Assembly (NCBI GenBank): GCA_002269645.1 | Contig: NIVC01000012.1 | Span: forward strand, 992,001-1,056,000 | Direction: 5' to 3' | DNA length: 64,000 nucleotides | From: Macrostomum lignano | Taxonomy: Eukaryota | Shown here: piece after piece, positions 29,400 through 59,185 of the stretch | How positions within the stretch are numbered: position 1 is the first letter of the stretch | How the letters are laid out: each line of letters starts with the position of its first letter | Program-made: the position numbers and the translations under genes | Notes under the pieces: model-generated | Databases searched by the model: none | What the model saw: the letters and a program-made list of their open reading frames with translations, nothing else | Told to the model about the DNA's origin: nothing

Positions 29400-30761
29400 T
29401 CATTCGAAATAGATGCTCACTTTGTTTGTATCGCCACACACCTCCAGGCGCATTCTCTTCACCCTTGGTTGACCACTGCCAACGCCACCGTCCATCTCGT
29501 CTCCAGCCCCGGCCGGCTCGGTTTTTGCTGCACTTTCCGGTTTCGTTTCAGCAGCTGCAGATCCAGCTAGGATGGCGCTGGAAGTTTTCTCTTGACTCAT
29601 TGAGATGCCAATGTAGCGCTCTAAAGCGTTGCTACTGTGCCTGGTCACACGTGCTATGTCAGCTCGTTGCACGCCAGCCTCGTTCAGGGTGGTAGCGCAG
29701 GTCTTGCGTAGACTTTGATTAGTGTAGCGTGTACCATTACCAGGCGAAACATCGTTCACTAAAGTCTTGACAGTGTCAGCCAGGGTGTGCCGTCCCATTG
29801 GCGTCCGCATAAACCACTCGGCGCGGCTGTCTGGCTTCCACTGACGATTGCATGACAAGATAAGAGCTTCATGGCACTCACGTGGCCGACGCGCGCAGTA
29901 GTCCGTGTACACACAGACAATGCACCTGGCATGATCTTCGGTGTGGAAAGCTCTGACAACCTTGGGTTCGCGACGAAGGCCCTTTAGGCCGCCTTGATTG
30001 GATTTCGTTCCAGCGTTGTCTCTATAAACCAAGCAGAATTCATTGTCTACCTTCTCCAGTTGGATTTGGCGGTTGTACACCAGACCACGCAGTTCGGATC
30101 CCCCGCGGAGAGCAAAGTGCTTACCGACGCACCAGATCAGAGCACTCACTAGCTGTTTTGGCGTATCCCGACCAAGCATGCCACTTTGCCACAGCTTGTC
30201 TTCTATGCTGGCAGGAACAGGCTCAGCTCTACGCAGTCCACTACCTCTGCCCTCTCGAGTACTCATCTTTATTGAAGCGTCCAACGCCCGTCGACTCTCA
30301 GCGAATTCCACATCCTTCCACAGGCTAAACGGTTTCTTGCAGTCGTTGACTAGGTAGTACTGCAACATACTGAAAAAGTCCTTCAACGTAGAAGCAGTGT
30401 ACCGAGAGCCACTCTTTGTACGCACCTCCAGTATGAACCATTTAAGTAGATAGTTAAGGTCCGATTTGCTCATGTCGGCAAGATCGGCAAGAAACATCAG
30501 AGCAGGACCACCATTAGGTTCGGATTTTGCCCACTGTTCCTTCTTCTTGTCGTGCCAGCGTCGAAAAACTTCCACCATCCATTGACACTTCTTCTTTGTT
30601 CCCTCCGGAATAACAGATTTAATTATTTATTCTAGCCTCTGCTCCTCAATAGCAAACTCCAATTCTCCATCTGTAGGAACGCCTGTAGCACTCAATAAAT
30701 CGTCGATTGTCGCAAAGTCGAGTGGCATAAAGTCGATCCCGAGATCAAAATCTAAATCCAT
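29400..30761 (-). pseudogene. DUF3504-like (Crypton) tyrosine recombinase, copy 2; near-intact with one in-frame TAA at 30627-30629
   Basis: ORFs 30627-30824 and 29400-30578 are in frame (RLE*IIKSVIPEGTKKKCQWMVEVF). Catalytic-type motifs HFALRGGSELR, YTNQSLRKT (H to Q), RVTRHSS and ALERY. Confidence 0.82.
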
Positions 30762-31307: not shown

Positions 31308-33052
31308 TTGGTTTTGTCAGCCTAACTGAGAATAAAGCCATCCAAAGTGAGAATCCTGCCTACGCTGACTGCGAAGGGCCTGGCTGCGTGCAGCCTTAGT
31401 CTATGGGCCATAGACAATAAAGGACAAGCAAAGTGATAAAAAGCCATCATATGTGAGAATCGATTGGTCTATGCGTCGTATTCTTTTATTTTTATGCCTT
31501 CTGAGCCATATGAATAGCCAATAGCTTGAACGGAATAACGGAAACAGGAACACACTGGATGATACAGTACAGTAAAGTAAAGAGTTAAAATAGCCGTCCC
31601 TCAATGCACTGCCCAAAGAGTCGTCTGCAATGCAGGTCCCACGCGGCAGCCTTCCCAGCAGTGACTGTGTCGTCAATCGCTTCGCGCGCCTCCCTCTCTA
31701 ACAGCATGAATCGCCACTCCTCTTGGTTGACGCCATCTGGAGCAACGGCCTCCTCGTTGACTAGTCCAGCGTCTGCCCGGCGGCTTTTGATCCGTGCCTT
31801 CAGTGCACTGTTGGCCAGTTCCGATGGGTTGAGAAAGGGTGAGTATGGCGGCAGGATGCGAATCGAGATTTCTCTTGTAGTTGCTCCGGCACCCTGGCTC
31901 CCCTGTGGAAGTGCGGGCCGTCCATCACAACCAGCCAGCTTCCATCGGCATCGAGCTCATTGCATCGCTCTGCCAAGAAGTTGATGAACTCCTGGAAGCG
32001 AACCAGCGTCTGACCACCCCGCTGCACGGTCGAGTGCACCAGGCCAAACTCTGCGCAGATAGCCATGCAGACGGTCACGTTTGGGCCTCTTTGTGTCGTC
32101 ACAGTCCGCTTAACAGGGCGACCCCTGATAGCACGGCCTTGCGATCGCCGTAGCCACAAGTTGAATCCAGTTTCGTCCAAATAGACGATGTGTACGGAGG
32201 CGTCAAGGTGCAGCATGAAGTTGGCATATTCTCTCCGGGCCTCGATGTTTTCAGGCAGATTGCAGCTCGCTCTGGTGTCACTGCCCTTCGTTCCGAGCTT
32301 CAGGGTGTATAGCATCCCTTGGAGCATCCGATCGACCGTCTTGTACCCCACTTGAGGCTTCTCCGGAAACTGTGCAGCCATGCAGTTGGCCATCTCTTTT
32401 AACGTTAGGAAGGGGTTCTCTTGCAGCTTCTGGTTCAGAAATTGCCGCATTTCATCATCAACTTTAAGAAGTCGTTGACCACCGCGAGGAAGCGCCTCAG
32501 TTCTTCCTTCTAGGCGATGCTGACGGGCAATTCTATAGGCAGTTGAGAAAGGCAGTTGCAGGACGGCTGCTGCTTCCCTTAGTGAGCTTCCATTTTCAAT
32601 GGCCGCAATGAGTCGCTGGTGGTCCACAGATGAGGCGGGCATTTTTATTGCAGTGGTGAAGACTGAACTCTGTTAATTCTAAGTGTTGGATAAATAGGCA
32701 AGAAAGCAACGAGACTGTGGGTGATGGAGAAGCAGTGATGGAGTGTTGCGCTTGGAGGAGTAGAGAGAGCTGGGGAAAAGAGAAAAAGCGATCGATTCTC
32801 ACATTGGATGCCTTTTTAAAACTTTGCTTGTCCTTTATAGTCTATGGCTCATAGACTAAGCTGGACGCAGCTAGGCCCTTCGTATTTAGCGTAGGCAGGA
32901 TTCTCACATTGGATGGCTTTTTATCACTTTGCTTGTCCTTTATTGTCTATGGCCCATAGACTAAGGCTGCACGCAGCCAGGCCCTTCGCAGTTAGCGTAG
33001 GCAGGATTCTCACTTTGGATGGCTTTATTCTCAGTTAGGCTGACAAAACCAA
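31308..33052 (-). mobile_element. Tc1/IS630-superfamily DNA transposon with ~150-bp TIRs and TA flanks
   Basis: TA|TTGGTTTTGTCAGCCTAACTGAG... at 31308 and its reverse complement ending at 33052|TA. The right end carries an extra ~108-bp subterminal duplication. Confidence 0.88.
31585..32642 (-). pseudogene. Tc1/IS630-type HTH + DDE transposase with one frameshift near 31865
   Basis: N-terminal HTH; VYLDETGF; VVMDGPHFH; in the shifted frame IRILPPYSPFLNPSE (D-to-E spacing about 33-34). Confidence 0.85.
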
Positions 33053-33867: not shown

Positions 33868-34613
33868 GTGAAAATACTATTGTGTAAAAACTATTGTGAA
33901 GGAGCGTCTGTCAGGTAGCGGCGCCTCATGCAATCGGAACGTACTACGACGACTTTAAGGATCATAGTGATTCCAAAATATAAAAGGACTTTCTCTAGAC
34001 GATCAAATGAATGATGAGGATTAGGGATTGTGGAATGTGAGATTATGAATAGCCTGACTATTGCTTGTCCACGATGTGATACAAAGCTTGTAGGTAGGCT
34101 GGTCACTTGATGGCAGCCTTATGATAGCAGCATCGGGGAGACACGATCGCCATGTGCTGGAATAGGGAATGCACGAAAAGACCCATGATCAAGATTAGGC
34201 AGAAGTCAAGAATACACAAGGAAATCAAGCTTATTTTCTAATCTTACCTGCTTACCTGCTATCTTCCGAGCAAACTGTTTTGTTTAGTAGGCAACATTAA
34301 TTTAGAAACCGAGACAAAAGCACATTTTTAACTTTCCGGTGAAGGGAAGTTCGAAGTTGAGTCAAATCTGGGCAAGGTGCAGAAAGTCGGCTGTTTTGCA
34401 CTGAAAAAAAGCTAAAATAAAATTTAGATAAGATTTCAAGCTTGAACAGCTGGCCAAATTTAGAACTGCGATTTCATGTTTTTCCGGTCGATCTTGAACT
34501 GCTTGTGCATAAAAGCAGTCCTCGAACGGGAATGACTGTCTGCCTGCAAGACGACACAAATTGATACGATCCTTGTCGCAGTTAGGACAGACTGAAACAA
34601 TCCTGCTGACAGA

Positions 34614-36300
34614 ATGCGGCTTATCTTGCTCATCACACTGGCTCTGCTAGCTGCAGTGACTATTGGTGAGTGACCGGTTTTGAATACAAAGACAGAGAGT
34701 GACTGACCAGGTGTTTCACTTTATGAATGAGTGACCTAGCGCATGACTGACTGAGTGTGAGACTTAATGAGTAATCGACTGAGTGACGTAGCGAGTAACC
34801 GAGTTAGTGACCCAGTGAGTGCATACATGTAGTGAGCGTCTGAGTTTGTTTCCAACTTCGGAGGCAATGTTCGCAGCAAAAAATAAGCGCATTCGAAAAC
34901 GCCGCAAAAATCGCAGGTCAAGGCGCTTCGCTCAGCTGCTCAGATGACTCAGACTGCCCAAACCACAGGCTCTGCTGTCACACCGAAGATGACACAGGAC
35001 CATTCGAGAACCGCGACTTTGGAGTTTGCGCAGCTCGTTGCTCGGTTGAGGAAACTCCCAGGTGAGTCGCTACGCTCGTACCCGAGTTCAGCTGCAGTTT
35101 TTGCAGAAACATTGGACTCGCAACGCATCAAAGTCAATATTTCAGATACTTTGAGTGCAAAATAATCTGCCAAACCGCAGACACACAGCACAGCAAACAC
35201 CCGTCCGCAGACACACAGCACATCAAACACCTATCCGCCGACACACAGCACATCAAACACCCATCCGCAGACAAACAGCACATCAAACATCCGTCCGCAG
35301 ACACACAGCACATCAAACACCTATCCGCAGACACACAGCACATCAAACACCCATCCGCAGACACACAGCACATCAAACACCTATCCGCAGACACACAGCA
35401 CATCAAACACCTATCCGCAGACACACAGCACATCAAACACCTATCCGCCGACACACAGCACATCAAACACCCATCCGCAGACAAACAGCACATCAAACAT
35501 CCGTCCGCAGACACACAGCACATCAAACACCTATCCGCCGACACACAGCACATCAAACACCCATCCGCAGACAAACAGCACATCAAACATCCGTCCGCAG
35601 ACACACAGCACATCAAACACCTATCCGCAGACACACAGCACATCAAACACCCATCCGCAGACACACAGCACATCAAACACCTATCCGCAGACACACAGCA
35701 CATCAAACACCTATCCGCAGACACACAGCACATCAAACACCTATCCACAGACACACAGCACATCAAACACCCATCCGCAGACAAACAGCACATCAAACAT
35801 CCGTCCGCAGACACACAGCACATCAAATACCTATCCGCAGACACACAGCACATCAAACACCCATCCGCAGACACACAGCACATCAAACACCTATCCGCAG
35901 ACACACAGCACATCAAACACCCATCCGCAGACAAACAGCACATCAAACATCCGTCCGCAGACACAAGCGCAGCCTCGGGGTCTTAGCCAGAGCCCTAGGC
36001 ACCATCATTCGGAGACTCGCCCGTTGGTACCGAAGCCGCGGTGTTGGCTCTACAACCAGCACTGGACTTCGGGTCATCACCCGCCGAGGCGGCTTCAGAC
36101 AGGCCAACAGAGACTTCGACAAGTTCGTGAGGCGATCGGACATCGAATCGGTGCGCCCAATTCCGGGCGTCGGTCGAGTCGCAATCGGCAAAGACGGCTA
36201 CAGGATGATCGTCAGGCAGCGAAGCAAAGACGGCAGACCGACGTTGGAACTGCAGAATAGCTCGGGCAAGTCCATCATCAAGTACCGGTACGAGCCATGA
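34614..36300 (+). CDS. Secreted prepro-protein A: signal peptide + 6-Cys acidic pro-domain + RHKR site + bacterial-toxin-like C-terminal domain; exons 34614-34665, 34917-35061, 35961-36300 (178 aa)
   Basis: MRLILLITLALLAAVTI|G (GTGAGT donor); exon 2 CSDDSDCPNHRLCC...VCAARCSVEETP ending in phase 2 (CCCAG|GTGAGT); CCGCAG|ACACAAGCGC restores RHKR and an open frame to KYRYEP*. The same structure is conserved in paralog B. The splice model is inferred. Confidence 0.72.
35176..35960 (+). repeat. 30-bp tandem repeat x26 (CGCAGACACACAGCACATCAAACACCYATC) containing the exon-3 acceptor
   Basis: 26 ten-residue units in ORF 35155-36300; each unit contains CCGCAG|ACA or a close variant. Confidence 0.93.
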
Positions 36301-36644
36301 GTTCTAACTCCTGCTTGTGTTTGTTGATAACCTTATTTACAATCTTTTCCGGAGAGGTGCGAACAATTCGTTAAAACAAGCAAATTCTTTCGTTGTGTTT
36401 CAGTAAGTGCTCCTTGTAGTAGTACAATCCGAAAATTATTCGCCAACTGACTATGAATGCATTATTTTTATTAAATGTTGATTGTAATTTTTTCTATTTG
36501 ACTGTTTCAAATATACCGAACTGGCAGTTTTTCTGACTGCGAATGGCTTGGCTACGTATTTAATGATGAGTTGAAACAGTTAGATAACTTCATTATATGA
36601 ATTAAGTATTGTTAAATTTACCCTGCCTGCACGATCAACATGTA

Positions 36645-37639
36645 CGAGGGGTGTCCAAAAAGTAGTGATACTTTTAACCGTAGCTCTCGTTCTGTAGCTT
36701 CCTGTGATTTAAAATTTTATGAACTGATAGCGGAAAATCTCTTCTACAGACTGCTTTTTGAATTTTTAAAATTGATACCAGAGAACAAAAGTTATACCCA
36801 CAAAAGTAACAGTACCTGTACCATAGAGTTACACAAATTATAGGCTGAGCTTCACGAGATCCATGCCGAGTAAGCTTCGATGAATTGTTGATTTCGGCTT
36901 GTCCAACCTGTCAGCGATCTCTCTAATGGTCATTCGGGAGTCCTCGTCAAGAAGATTCAGAATGGAGTCCGCCAGTACATCAGGTCGATGAACGTATGGC
37001 CGCCCCGTCCAATGCTGATCTGCCAAGTCAATCCTTCCCTCGCTGAACTGCTCCATCCATCGATAAACTGTCATTTTGCTGACCGCAGAGGATCCGTGCG
37101 CAGAGCAAAGTTTTGCGTGAATTTCTGAGGCACCATGGCCAGCGCCCCAAAGAGTGAAGATAGTACTTTGCTGAGCAACAACTGAGTGCACATTCATGTG
37201 TGTTGTCGAGTATGGGCAATGAAATCATGAACGAATCGCAAAATGCAAGCGATCCTCTGTTTGCAAGTAAAGTAATGCATTTAATGCTTTATTTTTTCTG
37301 CGCCTGATCCCGTCCATAGATAAATTTCAGTCAGTCACAGTGAGCATCATTTTGCAATTGGGGTTTGGTATTGCTTAAACAAGACATTTATCGATGCCTT
37401 CTTAATGAATGAGTGCAGAAGTCAACTATTATAAATTTCGATATAATTTGTGTAACTCTATGGTACAGGTACTGTTACTTTCGTGGGTATAACTTTTGTT
37501 CTCTAGTATCAATTTTAAAAATTCAAAAAGCAGTCTGTAGAAGAGATTTTCCGCTATCAGTTCATAAAATTTTAAATCACAGGAAGCTACAGAACGAGAG
37601 CTACGGTTAAAAGTATCACTACTTTTTGGACACCCCTCG
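36645..37639 (-). mobile_element. Internally deleted mariner element with ~198-bp inverted ends and TA flanks
   Basis: TA|CGAGGGGTGTCCAAAAAG ... CTTTTTGGACACCCCTCG|TA. The internal ORF 36838-37197 is a mariner N-terminal HTH (ASEIHAKL...SKMTVYRW..QFSEG...GRP), truncated before the catalytic domain. Confidence 0.9.
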
Positions 37640-37689
37640 TAGCTTTTCACTCAATTGTCTCAGTTTTTCACTCACTCGTTTAATCACTC

Positions 37690-39400
37690 TGTCACTCACT
37701 AATTTAATCACTCACTCCGGAGTCCGGCTCCAGAGCAGAGACTGCGAGTCTGTGGCGCAGCGGAGCTCACCGCTGCTCGGCCATCGCAGGATTTTGAGTG
37801 CCGCTTGAAGGCCCAGCCGGATTGCGCACTCCTCGGCTCTGAAGGACGAGGTGCCGCGGCCAGTCGGGGCCTGTAGCCGTTGTGGTGGACGGCCGGGGAC
37901 GATCAAGACGGCGTCCTCACCGCCGCGCAGAGTGCCGCCGGTCGCAGAGCCGTCAGTCCAGAGCTGCAAGTCTGGCTGCGGAAGAGCGGCTAGGGTTTCT
38001 AAGGCCTCCCTTAGCGCGCCAAGACTCTCCTCCTGTACATCATCAACCTTTCGTGAAGAAAGGCGGAGAGAGGCGGCTCGGCGACATCCGCCCGATTACC
38101 AAGCCGGAAAAATCACCGGACCTCACCGCCAACTATCGCCCCATCTGTCTTCGTTCCTGCGTTGCGAAGGTCGCTGAAAGGATGGTCAACGAATGCCTCA
38201 CACACTTCCTTGAAGAGGGCTGCCTGATCAACCCAACATAGGTCGGCTTCCGTAGGTACCGCTCCACTGAGGAGAAAATCACTGCCGTCATACAGTACAT
38301 CTTCGACGGCCTGCAGACGAAGAAGCCAGCAAAGCGTTCAGCTCTCCTCCTCGGTGTTTTTTCGAGAGCCTACGACCGCGTGTGGCGAAATTCCCAAACC
38401 GTCAACCTTCACCGCAAGAGGGTCCCCACCTGCATGAACCGATGTCTCAGAAGGTTCCTCTTGGATAGACGCGCCTGAATCATCTGGAATGGAACCAGAA
38501 GCCGGATCCTTACTCCGATGGCCTTCCGCAATGCTCGGTCCTCGCCCCGACCCTGTGGATCGTCTTCATGGACGACCTCCTGCATGGCGCGACTAAGGAC
38601 GTCCTGACAATGGCATACGCCAACGACAGCACCTTTAGAGCTCAGGGGACGACTGCCCGTGACTACCCGTGAGTGCGAGGTCCACCTTCCAGACCTGGAA
38701 GGTGGACCTCAGCAGGACCAAGTCGGTTTGTCGCGGACTTCTGTCTCGACCCGCGGGAGCCACGCATCATGCTCGAAGACTCCCAGGACCCCTTCGAACT
38801 GCACCCAAAACTGCTTGTGTTTATCTGGATCCGCAGCTTATCTTCCGCCACCAAGCCTCAATTCAGCGCAGGAACCTGCAAAAGCGCACCAGTGTCCTGA
38901 GGTGCCTCACCGACCGTGACTGGGGTCAGGACTCGCACACTCTCACGCTTGCATCGCACCTATGCCTAATCTGCTGTCCTCCATGGCGCGGCAGCCTGTC
39001 TAAACTTCGCTTCGGACTCATGCCGCCAAGGAGGTGGAGACAGCACACAATTCGGTCGCCAGGGTCATCACCGGCTGCTGCCCGCGGTCCACACCTGTTG
39101 CGGCACTCCTTCAAGAAGCCAAGCTCCAACCTCTTACCCCGCGCGCTGCGACCGCTGGCGCCACCCTCCTTGACAGGATTCTGAGGCAACACCAGCTGAC
39201 TCCACTCCGCCGGCTAGCCGAGCTTACTTGTAACATCGCTCCGAGACTACGCGCCCATGGCGCCAACGGCAGCTTCCACGCCGGCGTCGAGGATGCGCCG
39301 AGAGAGATGGACAACGCGCCAATTCCGCACTGGCATGCCGATTGCCGGGTCACCATTGCCCGGACCTCTGCGGCACGACGTCCCGCGAGGACCCACCTGT
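37690..39400 (+). mobile_element. Decayed I-group-like LINE: reverse transcriptase on plus (~38045-39400), RNase H fragment on minus (~37700-38040)
   Basis: Plus strand: NYRPICLRSCVAKVAERMVN, GFRRYRSTEE, SRAYDRVW, LPQCSVLAPTLWIVFMDDL, AYANDS. Minus strand: LWTDGSA...SSFRAEECAI...ATDSQS. Confidence 0.8.
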
Positions 39401-39559
39401 GAGTCGGGGTCGCATGTGTACTTTACTTCAGGTCAGGTGATGCACCTCAAATATATATTCACCGGTTGCGGGCTCTTGTGAGATCCGTACTATTTTTCCA
39501 CCTCGCGGTAACCGTCTGAGTTTACTCACTACACCACCGCATATCCTCAAAGTGCATGA

Positions 39560-39850
39560 ATATCCGTTGTAGCCTAGTGGTTACAGCGTCGGACTCACTA
39601 CTTAAGGGTCGGCGCCTGGTTCGATTCTCGATGCCACTGAACGTTTTTGTCCGTGAGCAAGTCACTTACGAGCGTAACTCTGAATTAATTCAGCTCACAC
39701 AGCTGTAAAATAGGTGCCAGCATTAGCTGGGGTAATTGAGGGTGTGTGGCGACCCCCCCCCCCAGAATCCTTGGACTGAACAGCCCTGCGCAGCCTTCAG
39801 ATCGCCGCGCAATAGCTGCAGCTGAGCTGTCGGTTGCACATCTGCCCATT
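39560..39850 (+). mobile_element. tRNA-derived SINE
   Basis: A box TAGCCTAGTGG (39570), B box GGTTCGATTC (39618), followed by GAGCAAGTCACTT and CAGCTGTAAAATAGGT body motifs typical of conserved-domain SINEs. Confidence 0.65.
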
Positions 39851-40419
39851 AGGGCAGGTGAAATCGCTCATAAAAAATGAATACCGCTTGTCCACGATGT
39901 GACACAAAGCCTTGCGACTAGGTGCGGCTGGTCACTTGATTACAATATTGTGATCAGCATCGCGGAGACACGGTCACCATGTGCTGGAAAAGGAAGTCCA
40001 CGAAAAGATCCCACGCGATCAAGATTGAGAAGAAACCAGTAATACTGTTCAAGGAAATCATGTTGACTTTTTAATCTTACCTGTTTAAACAAATTGCTTT
40101 ATTTGGTAGGCATGTCAAATTTATAGACACCGAGATAAAAAAAACAGTTTTCAACTTTCCGGTGAGTCAAAACTGGCAAGTTGCAGAAATTCGACTGTTT
40201 TGCACTGGAAATAAAGCAAAAATATAACACAGATAAGATTTTAACCTTCAACAACAGACCAAATTTATAACTGAGATTTGGATCGTTTTCCGGTCGATCT
40301 TGCACTGCTTGGGCATATAAGCAGTCAAACTTGACTGTCTGCAATTAGACGACATAAACTAATACGATCTCTGTTCCTTGTCACACGTTAAAACAGACGG
40401 AGACAGTCCTGCTGACAAA

Positions 40420-41567
40420 ATGCGACTCATCTTACTCATCGCACTGGGTCTATTAGCTGGAGTGACTATTAGTGAGTAAATGCGGTTTTGGAGACCAAGA
40501 CAGAGAGGTTGACGTTTTTCATGTTTGGAGTGACTGTGTGAGTCATTGGAGTCCAGGATTGAATGACTGACCGAGTGTTTACCTTCATGAATGAGTGACC
40601 CAGGGGATGACTGAGTGTGAGGCTTGGTGGGTGCCCCGTTGAGTACCGAGTGAGCGACCGAGTGGGTGTCCAGTTTCGGAGGCAATGTGCGCAGCAAAAA
40701 AGTAAGGCGCATTCCAAAACTCCGCAAAAATCGCAGGTCAAGGCGCCTCGCTCAGCTGCTCATACGACTCGGACTGCCCGAACCGGAGACTCTGCTGTCA
40801 CACCGAAGATAACTCAGAGCCATTCGAGAACCGCGACGTTGGAGTTTGCGCAGCTCGATGCTCGGTTGAAGAAACTCCAAGGTGAGTTGCTACCTAAGTG
40901 CAGCTGCAGCTTTTGCAGAAACATCACCGGACTCAGCACATCCAAGTCAATCCTTCAGATACTCTGAATATAAAAAAATTGCCAATCCCCAGACACAGCA
41001 CATCAAACACCCATCCGCAGACACAGAACACATCAAACACCAATCCGCAGACACAGAACACATCAAACACCCATCCGCAGACACAGAACAAATCAAACAC
41101 CCATCCGCAGACACAGAACACATCAAACACCCATCCGCAGACACAGAACACATCAAACACCCATCCGCAGACACAGAACACATCAAACACCCATCCGCAG
41201 ACACAGAACACATCAAACACCCATCCGCAGACACAAGCGCCACATCGCGGTCCTCAGAGGCCTGGGAATTATTGTTCCGAGACTCGCCCGGTGGTACCGA
41301 AGCCACGGTGTTGGCTCCACAACCAGCACAGGACTTCAGGTCATCACCCGCCGAGGCGGCTTCAATCAGGCCAACAATTACTTTGACAAATTTCTGAGGC
41401 GATATGACATCGAGTCGGTGTTTCCGATTGCGCACGGCGGTCGAGTCGCAATCGGCAGAGACGGCTACAGGATGATCGTCAGGCAGCGAAGCAAAGACGG
41501 CAGGCCGACGTTGGAACTGCAGAATGACTGGGGCAAGTCCATGATCAAGTATCGGTACGATCCATGA
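40420..41567 (+). CDS. Secreted prepro-protein B (paralog of A); exons 40420-40471, 40737-40881, 41231-41567 (177 aa)
   Basis: MRLILLIALGLLAGVTI; exon 2 CSYDSDCPNRRLCC...CAARCSVEETP, phase 2 (CCAAG|GTGAGT); exon 3 RHKRHIAVLRGLGIIVPRLARWY...GGFNQANNYFDKF...DGYRMIVRQRSKDGRPTLELQNDWGKSMIKYRYDP*, open with no stops. Confidence 0.7.
40990..41230 (+). repeat. 30-bp tandem repeat x8, homologous to 35176-35960
   Basis: Unit CGCAGACACAGAACACATCAAACACCCATC. Confidence 0.92.
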
Positions 41568-43425: not shown

Positions 43426-44871
43426 ATGCACTTTCTCGGCGGGATTCTCTTGACAATGGGAGCAGCATTCTGCTGGCTGCCCAACTCTGCGAGTCAGGCG
43501 GCTCCACCTCAACCGAAAAAGACAATCTACGACAGCTTGCTGACTCACCTATTTGACAAATACGCCCCGAGCGCCATGCCAATTTGTAAAGTTGGCGATA
43601 AACTCGAGGTCAGCCAGGACATGCTGCTCTACCAGCTGTTCGACTTGGACGAGCCAACCCAGATGCTCAGCGTGGACGTGTGGGTTGAATCAACCTGGCA
43701 GGACTGTCGACTGGTCTGGGACCCCGCCAGCTTCAATAATGTGACCGAGTTCGCCATCAAGTCCGAACAGATCTGGTACCCCGATCTCATCTTCTACGAG
43801 TCGTTGCACGGCAACTTCGAGGAGGGCATGTTCATCTACGGTGAGTCCACCGCTAGGGTGCGCCACGATGGCTGGGTGAAGCTCGGTGCCCAAGCCCTGT
43901 TCAAAGCCTTCTGCCGGGTCAACATCCGGCAGTTTCCCTACGACAGCCAGCGCTGCAACATCACCTTCAGCAGTTGGACAAAGGACGCGCGCACCTTCCG
44001 GTTGAAGCGGAAGAGCGGCGAAACTGGCGACAAGAAAGATCACGCCTTCGCAGAGGCCAGCAACGGCGAGTGGGAGGTGACGGGATTCCCGTCCTACAAC
44101 CGGATGACGGCCAGGAACATCGGTGTGCTCGAGAACGAAACCGCCGAGTACACGGAGGTCGTGTTCCAACTGCGGCTGCGGCGCAAGTACCTGTTCCACC
44201 AGACCTACATGCTGTTCCCCTGCATGCTGCTCACCTGGCTAGCGGCTTTCGCGTTCTTCCTGCCAACCGAGTGCGGCGAGAGAATCGCCTACATCACCAC
44301 CATACTGCTGTCTCTGGTGGTGTTCCTGCTGCTAGTGGCCGAAAATATTCCACGATCGGGCGACGCCGTGCCCATACTAGGGGTGTACTTCTGCCTCGCC
44401 GTCTGCCTGGTGAGCGTGGCCAATCTCATGGTCATTGCGTCCTACAATGTCAGCCTGAAGCCCAACGACTTCTGCCCGCCCGAGTGGCTGCGCCGGTGCT
44501 GCTTCCGCCTCGGCCCGCTGGTGGGCTTCCTGCCCACGCACCACAACGGCCGGGCGAAGCTCCTGGCGTTCCGGATGAACCCGCGAAATCCAACGACCTC
44601 TTCGAATGCCGAGGCGGCGACGGCGGCGGCGGACGCTGACGGTGACGAGTGCCGGACAGCCGACGCGCCGCTGGCCGACGAATCAGCGGACGACAAAACC
44701 GCCAAGACCGCAGCCGCCGCCAGGCCGGGCAACGCCAACACGTGGCGCTACCTGGGCATCGTGATGGACCGGCTATTTTTCGGCCTGTACCTGGTGGCCA
44801 ACCTGATTGGCACCGTGTGGATTCTGGCCGCCGCGTCGGCTGCCACGGCAGGTGAAAGCGGCACCAATTGA
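43426..44871 (+). CDS. Intronless Cys-loop ligand-gated ion channel subunit, nicotinic acetylcholine receptor-like, non-alpha
   Basis: Signal peptide; WQDCRLVWDP; IWYPDL; Cys-loop CRVNIRQFPYDSQRC; four TM segments; ECGERI before M2; no vicinal Cys-Cys in loop C. Confidence 0.92.
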   Translation: MHFLGGILLTMGAAFCWLPNSASQAAPPQPKKTIYDSLLTHLFDKYAPSAMPICKVGDKLEVSQDMLLYQLFDLDEPTQMLSVDVWVESTWQDCRLVWDPASFNNVTEFAIKSEQIWYPDLIFYESLHGNFEEGMFIYGESTARVRHDGWVKLGAQALFKAFCRVNIRQFPYDSQRCNITFSSWTKDARTFRLKRKSGETGDKKDHAFAEASNGEWEVTGFPSYNRMTARNIGVLENETAEYTEVVFQLRLRRKYLFHQTYMLFPCMLLTWLAAFAFFLPTECGERIAYITTILLSLVVFLLLVAENIPRSGDAVPILGVYFCLAVCLVSVANLMVIASYNVSLKPNDFCPPEWLRRCCFRLGPLVGFLPTHHNGRAKLLAFRMNPRNPTTSSNAEAATAAADADGDECRTADAPLADESADDKTAKTAAAARPGNANTWRYLGIVMDRLFFGLYLVANLIGTVWILAAASAATAGESGTN

Positions 44872-47235: not shown

Positions 47236-48848
47236 CACCTGTGTTAGACAGGGCTGGGTGTGTCACTTGGTGTTAGACAGGGGTGAAAGTCACCTACTAG
47301 TGTTAGATAGGGGTGTCATCTAGTGTTAGACAGGGGTGTCACCTAGTGTTAGACAGGGGTGTCACAGAGTGTTAGACAGGGGTGTCACCTAGTGTTAGAC
47401 AGGGGTGTCACAGAGTGTTAGACAGGGGTGTCACATAGTGTTAGACAGGGGTGTTACATAGTGTTAGACAGGGGTGTCACAGAGTGTTAGACAGGGGTGT
47501 CACATAGTGTTAGACAGGGGTGTCACATAGTGTTAGACAGGGGTGTCACATAGTGTTAGACAGGGGTGTCACATAGTGTTAGACAGGGGTGTCACTTGGT
47601 GTTAGATAGGGTGTCACCTACATGTAGTGTTAGACAGGGGTGTCACTTGGTGTTAGACTGGGGTGTCACCGACAGGGGGTGGACGTCACCTACAGTCTTA
47701 GACAGGGGTGTCACCTAGTGTTAGACAGGGGTGTCACCTAGTGTTAGACAGGGGTGTCACTTGGTGTTAGACTGGGGTGTCACCGACAGGGGGTGGACGT
47801 CACCTACAGTCTTAGACAGGGGTGTCACCTAGTGTTAGACAGGGGTGTCACCTAGTGTTAGACAGGGGTGTCACCTAGTGTTAGACAGGGGTGTCACCTA
47901 GTGTTAGACAGGGGTGTCACTTGGTGTTAGACTGGGGTGTCACCGACAGGGGGTGGACGTCACCTACAGTCTTAGACAGGGGTGTCACCTAGTGTTAGAC
48001 AGGGGTGTCACTTGGTGTTAGACAGGGGTGTCACCTACATGTAGTGTTAGACAGGGGTGTCACTTGGTGTTAGACTGGGGTGCCACCGACAGGGGGTGGA
48101 CGTCACCTACAGTCTTAGACAGGGGTGTCACCTAGTGTTAGACAGGGGTGTCACTTGGTGTTAGATAGGGTGTCACCTACATGTAGTGTTAGACAGGGGT
48201 GTCACTTGGTGTTAGACTGGGGTGTCACCGACAGGGGGTGGACGTCACCTAGTCTTAGACAGGGGTGTCACCTAGTGTTAGACAGGGGTGTCACCTAGTG
48301 TTAGACAGGGGTGTCACTTGGTGTTAGACTGGGGTGCCACCGACAGGGGGTGGACGTCACCTACAGTCTTAGACAGGGGTGTCACCTAGTGTTAGACAGG
48401 GGTGTCACTTGGTGTTAGATAGGGTGTCACCTACATGTAGTGTTAGACAGGGGTGTCACTTGGTGTTAGACTGGGGTGTCACCGACAGGGGGTGGACGTC
48501 ACCTAGTCTTAGACAGGGGTGTCACCTAGTGTTAGACAGGGGTGTCACCTAGTGTTAGACAGGGGTGTCACTTGGTGTTAGACAGGGGTGTCACTTGGTG
48601 TTAGATAGGGTGTCACCTACATGTAGTGTTAGACAGGGGTGTCACTTGGTGTTAGACTGGGGTGTCACCGACAGGGGGTGGACGTCACCTACAGTCTTAG
48701 ACAGGGGTGTCACCTAGTGTTAGACAGGGGTGTCACTTGGTGTTAGACTGGGGTGTCACCGACAGGGGTTGGACGTCACCTACAGTCTTAGACAGGGGTG
48801 TCACCTAATGTTAGACAGGGGGTCACCTGGTGTTAAACAGGGGGTCAC
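47236..48848. repeat. ~21-bp minisatellite (CTAGTGTTAGACAGGGGTGTCAC) with higher-order variants
   Basis: Direct periodicity. Confidence 0.93.
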
Positions 48849-49252
48849 ATGTGTAAGAGAAAAGTACAAAGATGTACTCGTAAGTGAAATAACGGCGCAC
48901 ATGTAAATTCACATGAAAATTTATTTAAATAATTATAACAGCCGCAGCGTACACAACATTTTATTACAGAAATTTTAAACATTAAATTCATTTGTCAAAA
49001 CTAAAGCTCATGATGTTTCCGCAAGTCCAAGTACAGTAAACACTGCGCCGCAAGAGTATGAAAGAATTTCAAATTCATTTTTACTAAATGCAGACTTTTT
49101 ACAGGAACACGTGACACAGTTGCAATAATAGTTAGTGTTAGCTAGGCAAAACATGCCTTTAACTAGGTCAGCCAGTAAGCATGCCAAGGAGTCGTTACAG
49201 AGAGAACTCCGGAGGAAGTCGCGTGAACTGTCTTTATTGTCTTTTATACACG

Positions 49253-50898
49253 TCTCTTAGTGGGCGCCCCTGTCTCTTGTTGGTTGCCCCTGTCTCTTAG
49301 TGGGCGCCCCTGTCTCTTGTTGGTTGCCCCTGTCTCTTAGTGGGCGCCCCTGTCTCTTGTTGGTTGCCCCTGTCTCTTAGTGGGCGCCCCTGTCTCTTGT
49401 TGGTTGCCCCTGTCTCTTAGTGGGCGCCCCTGTCTCTTGTTGGTTGCCCCTGTCTCTTAGTGGGCGCCCCTGTCTCTTGTTGGTTGCGCCTGTCTCTTAG
49501 TGGGTGCCCCCTGTCTCTTGTTGGTTGCCCCTGTCTCTTAGTGGGCGCCCCTGTCTCTTGTTGGTTGCCCCTGTCTCTTAGTGGGCGCCCCTGTCTCTTG
49601 TTGGTTGCGCCTGTCTCTTAGTGGGTGCCCCCTGTCTCTTGTTGGTTGCCCCTGTCTCTTAGTGGGCGCCCCTGTCTCTTGTTGGTTGCCCCTGTCTCTT
49701 AGTGGGCGCCCCTGTCTCTTGTTGGTTGCCCCTGTCTCTTAGTGTGCGCCCCTGTCTCTTGTTGGTTGCGCCTGTCTCTTAGTGGGTGCCCCCGTCTCTT
49801 GTTGGTTGCCCCTGTCTCTTAGTGGGCGCCCCCTGTCTCTTGTTGGTTGCCCCTGTCTCTTGTTGGTTGCCCCTGTCTCTTAGTGGGCGCCCCTGTCTCT
49901 TGGTGGGTGCCCCTGTCTCTTGGTGGGCGCCCCTGTCTCTTGTTGGTTGCCCCTGTCTCTTAGTGGGCGCCCCTGTCTCTTGTTGGTTGCCCCTGTCTCT
50001 TAGTGGGCGCCCCTGTCTCTTGTTGGTTGCCCCTGTCTCTTAGTGGGCGCCCCTGTCTCTTGTTGGTTGCGCCTGTCTCTTAGTGGGTGCCCCCGTCTCT
50101 TGTTGGTTGCCCCTGTCTCTTAGTGGGCGCCCCTGTCTCTTGTTGGTTGCCCCTGTCTCTTAGTGGGCGCCCCTGTCTCTTGGTGGGTGCCCCTGTCTCT
50201 TGGTGGGCGCCCCTGTCTCTTGTTGGTTGCCCCTGTCTCTTAGTGGGCGCCCCTGTCTCTTGTTGGTTGCGCCTGTCTCTTAGTGGGTGCCCCCGTCTCT
50301 TGTTGGTTGCCCCTGTCTCTTAGTGGGCGCCCCCTGTCTCTTGGTGGGCGCCCCTGTCTCTTGTTGGTTGCCCCTGTCTCTTAGTGGGCGCCCCTGTCTC
50401 TTGGTGGGTGCCCCTGTCTCTTGGTGGGCGCCCCTGTCTCTTGTTGGTTGCCCCTGTCTCTTAGTGGGTGCCCCCTGTCTCTTGTTGGTTGCCCCTGTCT
50501 CTTAGTGGGCGCCCGTCTCTTGGTGGGTGCCCTGTCTCTTGGTGGGCGCCCCTGTCTCTTGTTGGTTGCCCCTGTCTCTTAGTGGGCGCCCCTGTCTCTT
50601 GGTGGGTGCCCCTGTCTCTTAGTGGGTGCCCTGTCTCTTGGTGGGTGCCCCTGTCTCTTGTTGGTTGCGCCTGTCTCTTAGTGGGTGCCCCCGTCTCTTG
50701 TTGGTTGCCCCTGTCTCTTAGTGGGCGCCCCTGTCTCTTGGTGGGTGCCCCTGTCTCTTAGTGGGTGCCCCGTCTCTTGGTGGGTGCCCCTGTCTCTTAG
50801 TGGGTGCCCCCGTCTCTTGTTGGTTGCCCCTGTCTCTTAGTGGGCGCCCCTGTCTCTTGGTGGGTGCCCCGTCTCTTAGTGGGTGCCCCTGTCTCTTG
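49253..50898. repeat. 20/40-bp minisatellite (GCCCCTGTCTCTTAGTGGGC / GCCCCTGTCTCTTGTTGGTT)
   Basis: Direct periodicity. Confidence 0.93.
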
Positions 50899-51418
50899 GT
50901 GCGCATCTCTTGGCCTGGATCATCGCGTCTTGAAAAGGATAGTGTTCAGGGAAGGACCAGACAACTGGTTGACGATCTCCTTGGTCGAGGCAAGCAAGCG
51001 ACTAACTACAGTAAGTGCACTGAACTAAATGCAGATGACAGTTCAGTGTGCACAATTATGAATAAACAAATTCATGCAACAGCCAAAACCAGAACCATAA
51101 AACACATGTAGACCGACCGATAAATACACATTTTACAGCATGGGTCCAACACAGCAGCTAAACTCTGATTAAATGCAAATTTATTTTATTCTAATAGTTT
51201 TCTAATAATTTTATTCTAATACAAAAGATTTTAATCCACTGATAAATCAATATACAGTGTAGCTCAACCCATATACTCGCCGATGCATCTCGGTTTCGTT
51301 TTTCCTATCGCTGAGGATGAATATAATTTAGTTTATTGGTTCTAGGAAATTTACTTTAACTGAATTTTAAAGCTAATCTATACATCATGGATTAAAGATA
51401 ATACTGGTTAGAATATTC

Positions 51419-52398
51419 CAGTCCAGATGCTACTGTCTAGTTTCCGCGGTTCCAGTCCAGTTGCTACTGTCTAGTGTCCACGGCCCCAGTCTAGTTGCTA
51501 CTGTCTAGTTTCCACGGCCCCAGTCTAGTTGCTACTGTCTAGTGTCCACGGCCCCAGTCTAGTTGCTACTGTCTAGTTTCCACGGCCCCAGTCTAGTTGC
51601 TACTGTCTAGTGTCCACGGCCCCAGTCTAGATGCTACTGTCTAGTGTCCACGGCCCCAGTCTAGTTGCTACTGTCTAGTGTCCACGGCCCCAGTCTAGTT
51701 GCTACTGTCTAGTTTCCACGGCCCCAGTCTAGTTGCTACTGTCTAGTGTCCACGGCCCCAGTCTAGTTGCTACTGTCTAGTGTCCACGGCCCCAGTCTAG
51801 TTGCTACTGTCTAGTGTCCACGGCCCCAGTCTAGATGCTACTGTCTAGTGTCCACGGCCCCAGTCTAGTTGCTACTGTCTAGTGTCCACGGCCCCAGTCC
51901 AGTTGCTACTGTCTAGTGTCCGCGGTTCCAGTCCAGATGCTACTGTCTAGTGTCCACGGCCCCAGTCCAGATGCTAGTGTCTAGTGTCCACGGCCCCAGT
52001 CTAGTTGCTACTGTCTAGTTTCTGCGGTTCCAGTCCAGTTGCTACTGTCTAGTGTCCACGGCCCCAGTCCAGATGCTGCTGTCTAGTGTCCGGGGTTCCA
52101 GTCCAGATGCTGCTGTCTAGTGTCCACGGCCCCAGTCCAGATGCTAGTGTCTAGTGTCCACGGCCCCAGTCCAGATGCTACTGTCTAGTGTCCGCGGTTC
52201 CAGTCCAGTTGCTACTGTCTAGTGTCCGAGGTTCCAGTCCAGTTGCTACTGTCTAGTTTCCGCGGTTCCAGTCCAGTTGCTACTGTCTAGTGTCCGAGGT
52301 TCCAGTCCAGTTGCTACTGTCTAGTGTCCGCGGTTCCAGTCCAGATGCTGCTGTCTAGTGTCCGGGGTTCCAGTCCAGATGCTGCTGTCTAGCGTCCA
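51419..52398. repeat. ~37-bp minisatellite (CCAGTCTAGTTGCTACTGTCTAGTGTCCACGGCC...)
   Basis: Direct periodicity. Confidence 0.92.
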
Positions 52399-52675
52399 CG
52401 GATTTTAATTATTAATTTTTAATCCAAAAATTTCGTGTAGACTGTAGTTAATGACAATAAAAAAGCCGAGAAAAGACGGTATGCATGGATATAAAATAGA
52501 GGCATGGCAACTAACAATTAAGCTAGGTAAGTTATTTTTCAGATTTATTTTATTTATGCATACTTTTTCATCATGTTCCTCACAAAGATTGTTAAGACTT
52601 TGGATAAATTATTGTTTGTTTAGATTGATTGACAGATATGCATGTAGGAGATGAGATAAATTGGGATATGAAATG

Positions 52676-52930
52676 GGGATATTTAAGAAACGAGGAGATT
52701 TGAGAAATGGGGAGATATAAGAAATGAGGATATTTGAGAAATGGGGAGATTTAAGAAATGGTGAGATTTAAGAAATGAGGAGACTTGAGAAATGGGGAGA
52801 TTTAAGAAATGGTGAGATTTAAGAAATGAGGAGATTTGAGAAATGGGGATATTTAAGAAATGGGGAGATTTAAGAAATGGGGATACTTGTGTGAAATGAG
52901 GAGATTTAGGGACTGGGAAATGGGAGAAAT
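52676..52930. repeat. ~21-bp degenerate repeat (GAGATTTAAGAAATGGG...)
   Basis: Direct periodicity. Confidence 0.8.
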
Positions 52931-53010
52931 ACGAAAAGATACGAGATGAGATATGTCTGAGGACAGCGCATAATCAGGCATGGTAATCATAAGACCCTAG
53001 CGCACTGTCA

Positions 53011-56000
53011 TCAGGCTGCACCTGCTAAGCGGCCGCCGCCCTCCCTGGCCGCCACAGCGGCTCGCATGCGGCCAAACCAGGGCCTCAGCTTCGGACAGTT
53101 GTCCATAGCGTCCGAGAACGCGGCGGTGCCCTCCATGGCCGTGAGCACGCCGTACATGGACAGGTCGCTCAAGTCGGGCCGGTCGCCGCCGCGAAAGCGA
53201 CGCTTGCCGACGCCGTTAAGTAAGAAAGCGTCGAGCTCGTTGTAAAGCGACTTGCGCACGTCGCGATGGAGATTGTATTTGGAGCGCAGGCGCATGGATA
53301 CCAACCGCATCACGGCCGCGCCTGAGGGGTGGAGATGACGGATGCTTTATTTATATTAGGGCTAGGAAGCTGTAAGTTCGGGGTCGGAAGCTAAAATCTA
53401 ACAAAGTGGAAGCTGGAATCTCCGGATTGGAAGCTGGAATCTCGGAATGGAAGCTGGAATCTCATGCTTGGAAGCTGGAATCTCGGGATGGAAGCTAGAA
53501 TCTTTGGGGTGGAAGCTGGAATCTCAGAGTGGATGCTGGAATCTTAGAGTGGAAGCTAAATCTCGGGGTGGAAGCTGGAATCTCTGGGGTGGAAGCTGGA
53601 ATCTCTGGGGTGGAAGCTGAATCTCGGTGGTGGAAGCTGGAATCTCTGGGGTGGAAGCTGAAATCTCGGGGTGGAAGCTGGAATCTCAGAGTGGATGCTG
53701 GAATCTTAGAGTGGAAGCTAAATCTCGGGGTGGAAGCTGGAATCTCTGGGGTGGAAGCTGAATCTCAGGGTGGAAGCTAAATCTCGGGGTGGAAGCTGGA
53801 ATCTCTGGGGTGGAACTTGGAATCTCAGGGGTGGAAGGTGGAATCTCGGGGTGGAACTTGGAATCTCAGGGGTGGAAGCTGGAATCTCTGGGGTGGAACC
53901 TGGAATCTGGGGGTGGAAGCTACCAAGAAAAGCTACTGAAGAGGACTGTCAAACGGTAGGCAGCTAAGCTCACCAGTATAGATCACCAGAGCTCGCTCCG
54001 CAGGTGTGAAGCATTTCTCCCAATCGCCTGCCTTGTCAAACCAGCGAAAGCTGTCCAGAGCCTCCGGCAGGGTGCGGTAGATGTTGGGCGAGATGGTGTG
54101 CACGAACACATCGTCTACCCATTGCCGCCACTTCTGCTCTTCGCGTAGCTTCGACTCATCAAGTTTCTGACCCGGCTGCATGACGAAATACCTGCAGCGG
54201 CGTGAGGGTGACATGTCAAATTTCTAGTAACTCTCACCTGTCTGCTATCTACTCTCACCTGTCTGCTATCTACCCTGTCTGCTATCTACTTTTCTAACCT
54301 GTCTGCGATCTACTTCTCTACCCTGACTGCTATCTACTTCTCTACCCTGTCTTCTATCTACTTCTCTACCCTGTCTGCTATTTACTTTCTCTCCCCTGTC
54401 TGCTATCTACTTTCTCTCCCCTGTCTGCTATCTATCTACTTCTCTACCCTGTCTGCTATCTACTTCTCTACCCTGTCTGCTATCTACTTCTCTACCCTGT
54501 CTGCTATCTATTTTTCTCTACCCTGTCTGCTATCTATCTACTTCTCTACCCTGTCTGCTATCTAATTCTCTCCCCTGTCTGCTATCTACTTTCTCTCCCC
54601 TGTCTGCTATCTACTTTCTCTCCCCTGTCTGCTATCTACTTTCTCTCCCCTGTCTGCTATCTACTTCTCTACCATGCCTGCTATCTAATTCTCTCCCCTG
54701 TCTGCTATCTACTTTCTCTTCCCTGTCTGCTATCTACTTTCTCTACCCTGTCTGCTATCTACTTCTCTACCCTGTCTGCTATCTACCCTGTCTGCTATCT
54801 ACCCTGTCTGCTATCTACTTCTCTACCCTGTCTGATATCTACTTCTCTCCCCTGTCTGCTATCTACCCTGTCTGCTATCTACCCTGTCTGCTATCTACTT
54901 CTCTACCCTGTCTGCTATCTACTTCTCTCCCCTGTCTGCTATCTATTTCTCTACCCTGTCTGCTATCTACTTCTCTCCCCTGTCTGCTATCTACTTCTCT
55001 ACCCTGTCTGCTATCTACCCTGTCTGCTATCTACCCTGTCTGCTATCTACTTCTCTACCCTGTCTGCTATCTACCCTGTCTGCTATCTACCCTGTCTGCT
55101 ATCTACTTCTCTACCCTGTCTGCTATCTACCCTGTCTGCTATCTACCCTGTCTGCTATCTACCCTGTCTGCTATCAACTTCTCTACCCTGTCCGCTATCT
55201 ACCCTGTCTGCTATCTACCCTGTCTGCTATCTACCCTGTCTGCTATCTACCCTGTCTGCTATCAACTTCTCTACCCTGTCTGCTATCTAATTCTCTCCCC
55301 TGTCTGCTATCTACTTTCTTTCCCTGGTCTGCTATCTACTTCTCTACCGTGTCTGCTATCTACTTCTCTACCGTGTCTGCTATCTACTTCTCTACCGTGT
55401 CTGCTATCTACTTTCTCTACAACGTCTACCATTTACTTTTTATCCCCTTCCTTCTCCCCCAACTAAACGGGTAGAGGCCTAACAAAAAACTGGGTAGGCC
55501 CCTATTAAAATGACTCACCGATTAGGATAAGTCAGCTTGCCGCCTTCTTCGCCCACTATGCCGGGATAGCACAGCCGCAGCTGGGCCAGCGACTGGCTTG
55601 GATCGCGAATCCGACTTTCCAGAGCGCTCATGATTACAGATGAGTCTTTGAGCACCACCTGCATAGTTGAGGAAAGCCAGACAAAAAAATTGAGACTTCG
55701 AATATAAACTCAAGCTTAGAAATGACCGCCTGATCCCCAATTATTTAGCGCCAACTGACACCCAATAAACTGGCGCCAACTGACACTCAATAAACTGGCG
55801 CCAACTGACACCCAATAAACTGGCGCCAACTGACACCCAATAAACTGGCGCCAACTGACACCCAATAAACTGGGGCCAACTGACACCCAATAAACTGGCG
55901 CCAACTGACACCCAATAAACTGGTGCCAACTGACACCCAATAAACTGGCGCCAACTGACACCCAATAAACTGGTGCCAACTGACACCCAATAAACTGGCG

Positions 56001-59154: not shown

Positions 59155-59185
<31 letters not shown>

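Follow-up and report, generated by a model that had tools for sequence, protein, structure and literature searches.

Teneurins are animal receptors with a C-terminus derived from a bacterial YD/RHS toxin. The framework for bacterial polymorphic toxins themselves was reportedly set out by Zhang, Aravind and colleagues in 2012. Here, we describe two tandem genes of the flatworm Macrostomum lignano in which a captured polymorphic-toxin tip, almost certainly acquired by horizontal gene transfer (HGT), forms the mature part of a small precursor protein. The genes lie at 34614-41567 of a 64,000-nucleotide stretch (assembly GCA_002269645.1, contig NIVC01000012.1, positions 992,001 to 1,056,000, forward strand), which is called the window below and whose numbering is used throughout. 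The flatworm tip shows clear sequence homology to the tips of polymorphic toxins (RHS-CT, CdiA-CT, LXG, and MafB-type), and the bacterial members of its family show the C-terminal place, the RHS, VENN, PT-TG, PT-HINT, or LXG modules, the linkage to a type VI secretion system (T6SS), and the adjacent small open reading frame (ORF). In contrast to the described tips, this family is covered by no model in Pfam or NCBIfam and lacks a solved structure; its flatworm version, which has neither delivery module nor immunity gene, instead combines a predicted signal peptide with a Cys-rich pro-region and a putative convertase site.

An interbacterial weapon is also said to have reached animals in the case of the Dae proteins, which, as reported by Chou et al. 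in 2015 and Hayes et al. in 2020, derive from T6SS Tae amidases that passed into ticks, mites, and other eukaryotes. The flatworm genes resemble Dae in that an interbacterial toxin gene resides in an animal genome, has lost its immunity partner, has acquired introns along with a signal for eukaryotic secretion, and presumably helps to defend the host. However, Dae amidases attack the cell wall, outside the cytoplasm, whereas the bacterial relatives of this tip probably act inside target cells, and the flatworm toxin would therefore need an entry step; the flatworm protein also belongs to another toxin family, has an RHKR proprotein architecture, and has an activity that is predicted only. Teneurins are similar in the animal reuse of an RHS-type toxin end, and the model of a bacterial homologue gives weak Foldseek matches to them, but teneurins, an ancient group found throughout the metazoans, retain the YD shell, whereas here the tip alone is present, in one lineage and in a small, probably secreted precursor. 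Further HGT-derived animal toxins include cdtB (10.1101/544197) and the aerolysins. In the literature searched, no paper was found on either gene identifier (given below) or on Macrostomum together with a polymorphic toxin, and no described animal family was found, in line with a preliminary description of this DNA that knew of no animal family with this architecture. What is new with respect to the known animal cases is the toxin family, the probable intracellular action of its bacterial relatives, and the layout of signal, Cys-rich region, RHKR, and amphipathic helix.

The two genes, copy A and copy B, consist of the following parts:

34044-34613, + strand: 5′ flank and 5′ untranslated region of copy A within the duplicated unit, 81% identical to 39876-40419 upstream of copy B
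34614-34665, + strand: copy A exon 1 (52 nt), start codon and hydrophobic putative signal peptide (MRLILLITLALLAAVTIG), with a GTGAGT donor at 34666
34917-35061, + strand: copy A exon 2 (145 nt), anionic (-6) six-Cys region, a putative pro-region
35175-35960, + strand: minisatellite filling intron 2 of copy A, 30-bp unit (TRF 35175-35965, 26.4 copies, 92% matches)
35961-35970, + strand: start of copy A exon 3, (R)HKR, the R codon being divided by intron 2
35971-36036, + strand: N-terminal cationic amphipathic helix of the copy A mature part (SLGVLARALGTIIRRLARWYRS)
36037-36297, + strand: copy A toxin-tip core (mature residues 23-109), a homologue of the C-terminal domains of bacterial polymorphic toxins
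36298-36300, + strand: copy A stop codon (exon 3 including the stop, 35961-36300)
40420-40471, + strand: copy B exon 1 (52 nt), putative signal peptide
40737-40881, + strand: copy B exon 2 (145 nt), six-Cys anionic region
40985-41230, + strand: minisatellite in intron 2 of copy B, 30-bp unit (TRF 40985-41235, 8.4 copies)
41231-41567, + strand: copy B exon 3, with RHKR, helix, toxin-tip core (from 41304; 68.8 bits, E = 1e-13 against the bacterial profile), and stop

The homology of the mature part to bacterial toxins was established in both directions. When 1.84 billion cluster representatives were searched exhaustively with HMMER, a profile made from both flatworm domains returned 103 matches at E <= 1e-3, namely 102 bacterial proteins (best 6e-10) and the flatworm paralogue, and the match ends five or fewer residues from the C-terminus in 88 of these 102 bacterial proteins. 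A reciprocal profile, built from 178 bacterial tips only and with E-values scaled to a 5.8-billion-sequence space, scores copy A at 77.8 bits (E = 1.6e-16) and copy B, as listed above, in the same range. The homologous core comprises approximately 86 C-terminal residues, is 42-51% identical between the flatworm domain and the best bacterial tips, and retains in both copies all 13 near-invariant positions of the family (G40, G41, A45, F49, G76, R82, S85, G88, P90, T91, E93, R106, and Y107 in mature-domain numbering). The likeness to a bacterial polymorphic-toxin tip that the preliminary description had noticed is thus confirmed by the 102 bacterial matches and the reciprocal score, and there is little doubt that the mature part is an HGT-derived tip of this kind.

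In bacteria, the tip is brought into neighbouring cells by RHS/T6SS, CdiA/CDI, and LXG/T7SS systems. It is carried by RHS-repeat and DUF6443 proteins, by CdiA-type proteins with Fil_haemagg_2 repeats and PT-VENN, by the ends of Rhs cores (Rhs_assc_core), by PT-HINT (PF07591) proteins, and by a Bacillus LXG and PT-TG protein; carrier lengths range from 59 to 2126 residues among database matches, and stop-to-stop ORFs in a genome scan reach approximately 2500 residues. An Agrobacterium homologue (P0151) is a 182-residue effector within a VgrG-PAAR-DUF4123 operon. The tip may overlap with one of the 'STox' groups of a 2026 survey of Salmonella T6SS (PMC12994826). In CdiA, the tip comes after a segment of the size of an entry domain, and in 41 of 105 bacterial homologues a hydrophobic segment lies right upstream of it, which is what would be expected of toxins crossing a membrane to reach the cytoplasm. 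Because it is carried by CdiA and Rhs, after an entry-sized segment or a hydrophobic stretch, the tip probably acts in the cytoplasm of the target cell.

In all five full-length loci (L001, L002, L005, L006, and L008), the toxin gene is followed by a small ORF of 125-150 residues that abuts its 3′ end or overlaps it, and in a sixth, incomplete contig (L007), an ORF begins 21 nt downstream of the toxin gene. Among these downstream ORFs, those of L005, L006, and L008 are homologous to one another (blastp 5e-8, 9e-5, and 3e-3), that of L001 is marginally similar to them (E ~0.02), the opening residues of the L007 fragment are almost those of the L008 ORF, and the L008 ORF is preceded by an AAGGAG ribosome-binding site. 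The small downstream ORF is taken to be the expected cognate immunity gene; Pfam recognised no family in four of the putative immunity proteins, and no relative of the putative immunity gene is present in the flatworm 64-kb window.

Two bacterial loci add detail to this picture. In the Agrobacterium contigs (L002-L004, 260-7002), the complete module consists, in order, of VgrG, three unknown ORFs, PAAR, a DUF4123 adaptor, the toxin, and a 150-residue ORF. The ORF downstream of P0151 is unlike the putative immunity family of L005, L006, and L008, and the toxin family may therefore have at least two immunity types. In L005 (Aureisphaera, 1-5858), an orphan tip and its putative immunity gene lie downstream of a DUF6443/RHS gene that itself ends in Toxin-JAB1, which is the usual array of displaced toxin cassettes.

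The family is widespread in bacteria. When GTDB species genomes were scanned with a degenerate DNA pattern for VRxxSxDGRPTLE, and the matches were checked with the bacterial hidden Markov model (HMM), 79 loci were found against approximately nine by chance (a rough estimate), 73 of which were confirmed by the HMM. The 73 confirmed genomes belong to Bacteroidota, Bacillota, Pseudomonadota (including Yersinia, Serratia, Erwinia, Neisseria, and Moraxella), Myxococcota, Actinomycetota, Spirochaetota, Cyanobacteriota (a Prochloron metagenome-assembled genome), Acidobacteriota, and Ca. Babeliales; together with 202 database proteins, they bring the bacterial membership to more than 270 in at least nine phyla. 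Among the 15 billion proteins covered across the searches, no eukaryote other than M. lignano was found, and this species contributes only three proteins. In neighbour-joining trees of 180 and 247 tips, built on approximately 90 columns and unrooted because no outgroup was available, the flatworm pair is monophyletic (100/100) and groups with two metagenomic low-GC cassettes (P0012 and P0030) in 67-72% of bootstraps, with no named species especially close to it. The nesting among bacterial sequences that the preliminary description had put forward as a check is thereby seen beside two bacterial cassettes, and the broad vertical presence in animals that would have spoken against its proposal did not appear in the protein databases searched, with M. 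lignano as the sole eukaryote.

The flatworm genes themselves are two paralogous three-exon genes with conserved splice sites and phases, as had been predicted from the letters alone. All four introns open with GTGAGT and close with CAG, and the intron phases are identical in the two copies (1, then 2), as exon 1 measures 52 nt and exon 2 measures 145 nt in both. The spliced products, of 178 residues for copy A and 177 residues for copy B, exactly match the deposited hypothetical proteins BOX15_Mlig025890g1 (P0001) and BOX15_Mlig032647g1 (P0002) in a word-indexed search of 5.8 billion proteins; their deposited contig is 1.72 Mb long, and the third M. lignano relative in the same search (P0003) is a badly built gene model. 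The GenBank annotation of the assembly was derived from an RNA-seq-guided StringTie/TACO transcriptome and not ab initio (PMC5730564), and the junction of exons 2 and 3 therefore has indirect transcript support; the evidence for expression is that the models equal these RNA-seq-derived entries, at the level of annotation. Identity between the two copies is 81% for the protein, 87% for the coding DNA, and 81-84% for the introns and for 570 bp of 5′ flank, which marks a real tandem duplication of units of approximately 2.5 kb lying 5.8 kb apart, and not a chance resemblance. A TATA-like 'CATAAAAG' is found approximately 100 bp 5′ of the ATG of copy A.

That the ORF track masks both genes, as the preliminary description had pointed out, is evident from the position of the toxin domain, which in copy A is the end of a 381-residue repeat ORF (35155-36300) and in copy B is visible as a mere 49-residue GTG ORF. 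The minisatellite unit in intron 2 copies the boundary between the intron and exon 3, and the 'ccgcag' acceptor recurs in each unit, but only the last one yields the RHKR junction in copy A; the use of an upstream acceptor would insert in-frame decapeptides of the RHTAHQTPIR type ahead of RHKR, as the 30-nt unit is free of stops. Coding by the minisatellite itself was considered and rejected, since all three of its forward frames are stop-free, so that an open frame there is not evidence of coding, and since the deposited proteins use the last acceptor.

The setting of the genes is that of an animal genome, as had been assumed at the outset, and introns, transposons, a channel gene, and host-like third-position GC (GC3) agree on this. 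GT-AG introns separate the toxin exon from the two exons upstream to which it is spliced in both copies. The GC content of the toxin exon is 0.56-0.60 and its GC3 is 0.69-0.72, within the 0.62-0.81 GC3 of neighbouring host ORFs, whereas the nearest bacterial contigs have a GC content of 36-39%. Both ORFs are intact, and the ratio of nonsynonymous to synonymous substitution rates (dN/dS) between copies A and B is 0.37 at a dS of 0.29, rising to 0.53 over the toxin core.

The precursor has a simple linear layout. Residues 1-18 form a hydrophobic, signal-like segment (Kyte-Doolittle 19-residue maximum of 2.2 in copy A), and residues 19-65 are acidic, with a net charge of approximately -6 and six cysteines (C25, C31, C37, C38, C55, and C59 in copy A). 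The spacing of these cysteines is faintly like half a WAP domain, but the Pfam WAP scores of 17.3 and 18.4 bits are under the 20.8 cut-off, and six cysteines contrast with the eight-Cys WAP core. In both copies, RHKR occupies residues 66-69, matches the R-x-K/R-R convertase consensus, and follows the hydrophobic signal-like N-terminus. The part after RHKR comprises 109 residues in copy A and 108 in copy B, includes the GGFxQANxxFDKF and GRVAIGxDGYRMIVRQRSKDGRPTLELQNxxGKSxIKYRY motifs quoted in the preliminary description, and carries a charge of approximately +17 (A) or +11 (B). The toxin core is encoded whole in exon 3, with RHKR exactly at the exon 2/3 junction. The first 22 residues of the mature part of copy A form an amphipathic helix with a hydrophobic moment of 0.84 (reached by 0.2% of shuffles) and a net charge of +6, and this helix, which is found at residues 3-21 in the AlphaFold model, occupies the position of an acidic 'TVDDLI' helix ahead of the core in bacteria. 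The order of signal, Cys-rich region, RHKR, and toxin claimed earlier is accordingly present in both copies, with the hydrophobic N-terminus, the six cysteines, and RHKR all in place, and it is probable, judging from these sequence features, that the precursor is secreted and processed by a convertase.

The AlphaFold2 model of the flatworm mature part, based on an 89-sequence alignment, has a predicted local distance difference test (pLDDT) score of 86.5, with the core above 90, and a predicted template-modelling (pTM) score of 0.78. Its elements are, in order, a helix (3-21), a hairpin (25-28/34-39), a helix (41-55) with GGFxQANxDFD, and a five-strand meander (58-64, 68-73, 78-82, 91-95, and 101-108), and a second model, of the Aureisphaera homologue (pLDDT 81), has the same core. 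The family has no conserved His or Cys and no HNH, PD-(D/E)xK, Zn motif, ADP-ribosyltransferase, or NADase signature, and the conserved R82, E93, and R106-Y107 sit on three consecutive antiparallel strands of the model. The lone toxin-like Foldseek match of the flatworm model is a weak one to CdiA-CT(ECL) (4ntq_A, rank 36, E = 0.65, probability 0.47, TM score 0.35/0.46), while the Aureisphaera model gives non-significant matches to teneurin-2 and teneurin-4 (E ~0.1, probability 0.9-0.97).

In the models, the domain resembles colicin E3, the 16S rRNase CdiA-CT(ECL) (4NTQ), and the BECR toxins in its small size (approximately 80 residues) and its alpha+beta build, in which a helix precedes an antiparallel beta-meander. 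It further shares their delivery proteins and has conserved Arg, Glu, and Tyr residues that would be compatible with metal-independent RNA cleavage; in contrast, the catalytic set of colicin E3 and CdiA-CT(ECL) is Asp/His/Glu, and no His is conserved in this family. A metal-independent RNase of the RelE or colicin E5 kind may tentatively be said to fit better than other toxin chemistries, with a chance that comes close to even; another enzymatic activity is a real possibility, and a non-enzymatic inhibitor is unlikely.

With moderate confidence, we favour the reading that the tandem flatworm paralogues are built around a captured bacterial toxin tip and encode a secreted, convertase-activated antimicrobial protein. 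This reading starts from what is directly observed, namely the gene structure, the homology, the toxin-immunity context of the bacterial relatives, the eukaryotic setting, and the retention of the near-invariant residues. The core of approximately 86 residues would have descended from a polymorphic-toxin C-terminal tip, of which the toxin alone was kept and the immunity gene was not, and would then have acquired two upstream exons, one for the signal peptide and one for the anionic six-Cys region, along with RHKR at the exon 2/3 junction. The signal peptide would route the precursor to the endoplasmic reticulum, where compartmentalisation may shield the producer's cytosol and substitute for an immunity protein, and the acidic Cys-rich pro-piece, perhaps bound to the basic toxin, may add protection. 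A furin-type convertase would cleave after RHKR to release a cationic (+17) protein of 109 residues, which would be secreted, and its N-terminal amphipathic helix may aid the binding or crossing of target membranes. The core would then hit an intracellular microbial target, likeliest by metal-independent RNA cleavage, in a defence role.

The separate steps of this proposal differ in likelihood. The conserved residues suggest that the flatworm toxin is, on balance, still toxic, and an antimicrobial role is a plausible but tentative assignment. A bolder version, which we regard as rather doubtful, is that an unnamed toxin fold of the type V, VI, and VII (T5, T6, and T7) systems has been remade by the flatworm as a self-delivering, convertase-activated antimicrobial enzyme, in which the helix replaces the injection machinery and the secretory compartments replace the immunity protein.

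Several results weigh against the favoured reading or limit it. Sequence databases offered no family for the tip: Pfam matched neither the flatworm proteins nor any of 89 aligned members at E <= 1 (Ntox, colicin, EndoU, and RelE included), NCBIfam matched none of seven members, and PDB sequences gave no true match to a single sequence or a profile, the only hits being spurious ones to ThreeFoil, S9, and PPR/TPR proteins. Foldseek against the PDB gave nothing at E <= 1e-3 for either model, and barnase, EndoU, colicin E5/D, and RelE were absent from the top 50 of either search; the BECR-fold RNase that the preliminary description had guessed thus found no counterpart in Pfam, NCBIfam, or the PDB, by sequence or by structure. 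The RNase proposal draws on three points, which are the small domain, the absence of conserved His, Cys, or metal motifs, and the modelled placement of Arg, Glu, and Arg-Tyr on adjacent strands, and secretion and convertase cleavage are likewise inferred. A dN/dS of 0.37 indicates moderate constraint only, and the supplements to two expression papers on M. lignano mention the identifiers of neither copy A nor copy B. Past the nearest neighbours, the neighbour-joining tree of approximately 90 columns is weakly resolved, and the restriction to M. lignano among eukaryotes holds for the protein databases that were covered.

Among the alternatives, the one that best withstands the evidence, unlikely as it appears, is that the protein is an active toxin aimed at eukaryotic cells, whether of prey (diatoms), predators, parasites, or, via seminal fluid, mates, and thus a venom-like or sexual-conflict effector. 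A secreted proprotein with a cationic amphipathic helix would suit entry into any membrane-bound cell, other horizontally acquired animal toxins act on eukaryotes (for example, insect cdtB; 10.1101/544197), and no result obtained here points the flatworm protein at bacteria. However, in bacteria the family belongs to interbacterial delivery systems and comes with immunity genes, a context that suggests a target conserved among bacteria, and the gene identifiers are not in the searched reproduction-related tables.

It is less probable again that the domain now has a non-toxic function, serving for instance as a signalling ligand, as part of a structural or adhesive secretion, or as a module for binding, so that its toxin ancestry would be merely historical, as in teneurins. 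Teneurins demonstrate that animals can put the ends of RHS-type toxins to new use (PMC6297184), and the non-significant Foldseek matches of the bacterial model to teneurin-2 and teneurin-4 (E ~0.1) and the moderately low dN/dS (0.37 overall and 0.53 in the toxin core) would accord with such a job; against this, the retention of the near-invariant positions in both copies, R82, S85, E93, R106, and Y107 among them, is as expected if the ancestral activity is retained, and the combination of anionic pro-piece, convertase site, and cationic product is typical of stored cytotoxic or antimicrobial peptides.

Contamination, an assembly artefact, or a decaying functionless relic is very unlikely. The assemblies of M. 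lignano are repeat-rich and redundant (PMC5730564), and the third entry (P0003) is a garbled model, which would leave room for an artefact; yet both copies have GT-AG splicing and products that match RNA-seq-derived models on a 1.72-Mb host contig, eukaryotic transposons and animal genes lie in the flanks, GC3 is host-like, and a relic is contradicted by the intact ORFs and a dN/dS below 1. The same splicing, transposons, host genes, host-like GC, and intact ORFs also make a transfer from animal to bacterium very unlikely, and this, or an ancient animal-bacterial family, which a tree unrootable for want of an outgroup would accommodate, is the most improbable reading of all, given more than 270 bacterial members of at least nine phyla in toxin-immunity cassettes, a single animal species among 15 billion proteins, and the nesting of the flatworm pair beside two bacterial cassettes.

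If the favoured reading of a captured, secreted toxin is true, the analysis defines a widespread but unnamed bacterial toxin-immunity family (at least nine phyla; RHS-, CdiA-, LXG-, and VgrG/PAAR-linked) that is a ready target for toxin biochemistry, and it adds an intron-bearing, duplicated bacterium-to-animal transfer of an interbacterial weapon in a flatworm in which transgenesis and RNA interference are available. It also raises the testable question of how a captured intracellular toxin is delivered, and how its producer is kept safe, without the bacterial machinery. Should the bolder, self-delivering version hold, it would be the first animal case known to us of a domesticated polymorphic toxin acting inside a target cell, and a natural template for unaided cell entry by such a toxin.

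The remainder of the window holds the following features:

2288-3082, - strand: SET methyltransferase ORF, 264 residues, E = 1.2e-15
29400-30578, - strand: Crypton-like ORF (DUF3504 and QRICH1, with a weak tyrosine-recombinase match), upstream of copy A
31800-32642, - strand: Tc1/mariner DDE_3 transposase ORF, upstream of copy A
36643-37641: non-autonomous element of mariner type directly 3′ of copy A, in which terminal inverted repeats of 200 nt, 99% complementary, enclose a 119-residue ORF with a Mos1-type helix-turn-helix only
43426-44871, + strand: Cys-loop neurotransmitter-gated channel ORF, 481 residues, Pfam ligand-binding E = 7.5e-46 and transmembrane E = 1.2e-21

The mariner-type element looks like a recent insertion, and the channel ORF appears to be intronless. 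Between the two copies, the stretch at 37700-39400 is GC-rich (55-65%) and contains frameshifted ORFs (for example, 'YRPICLRSCVAKVAERMV'), the translations of which look like a decayed reverse transcriptase of a non-LTR (long terminal repeat) retrotransposon; one of these ORFs was searched against Pfam and gave no match. The sequence at 39560-39645 resembles the head of a tRNA-derived short interspersed nuclear element ('tagcctagtggttacagcg...ggttcgattctcg'), and ARAGORN called no tRNA in the tRNA-like stretch at approximately 39560-39640. Six perfect CCCTAA units at 4477-4512 form an interstitial telomere-like repeat, and in the last quarter of the window (47297-63999) long minisatellite arrays predominate, the periods of which are 17-34 bp and the copy numbers of which reach 83 (for example, at 49252-50901, 51418-52401, 60141-61376, and 61781-62728).

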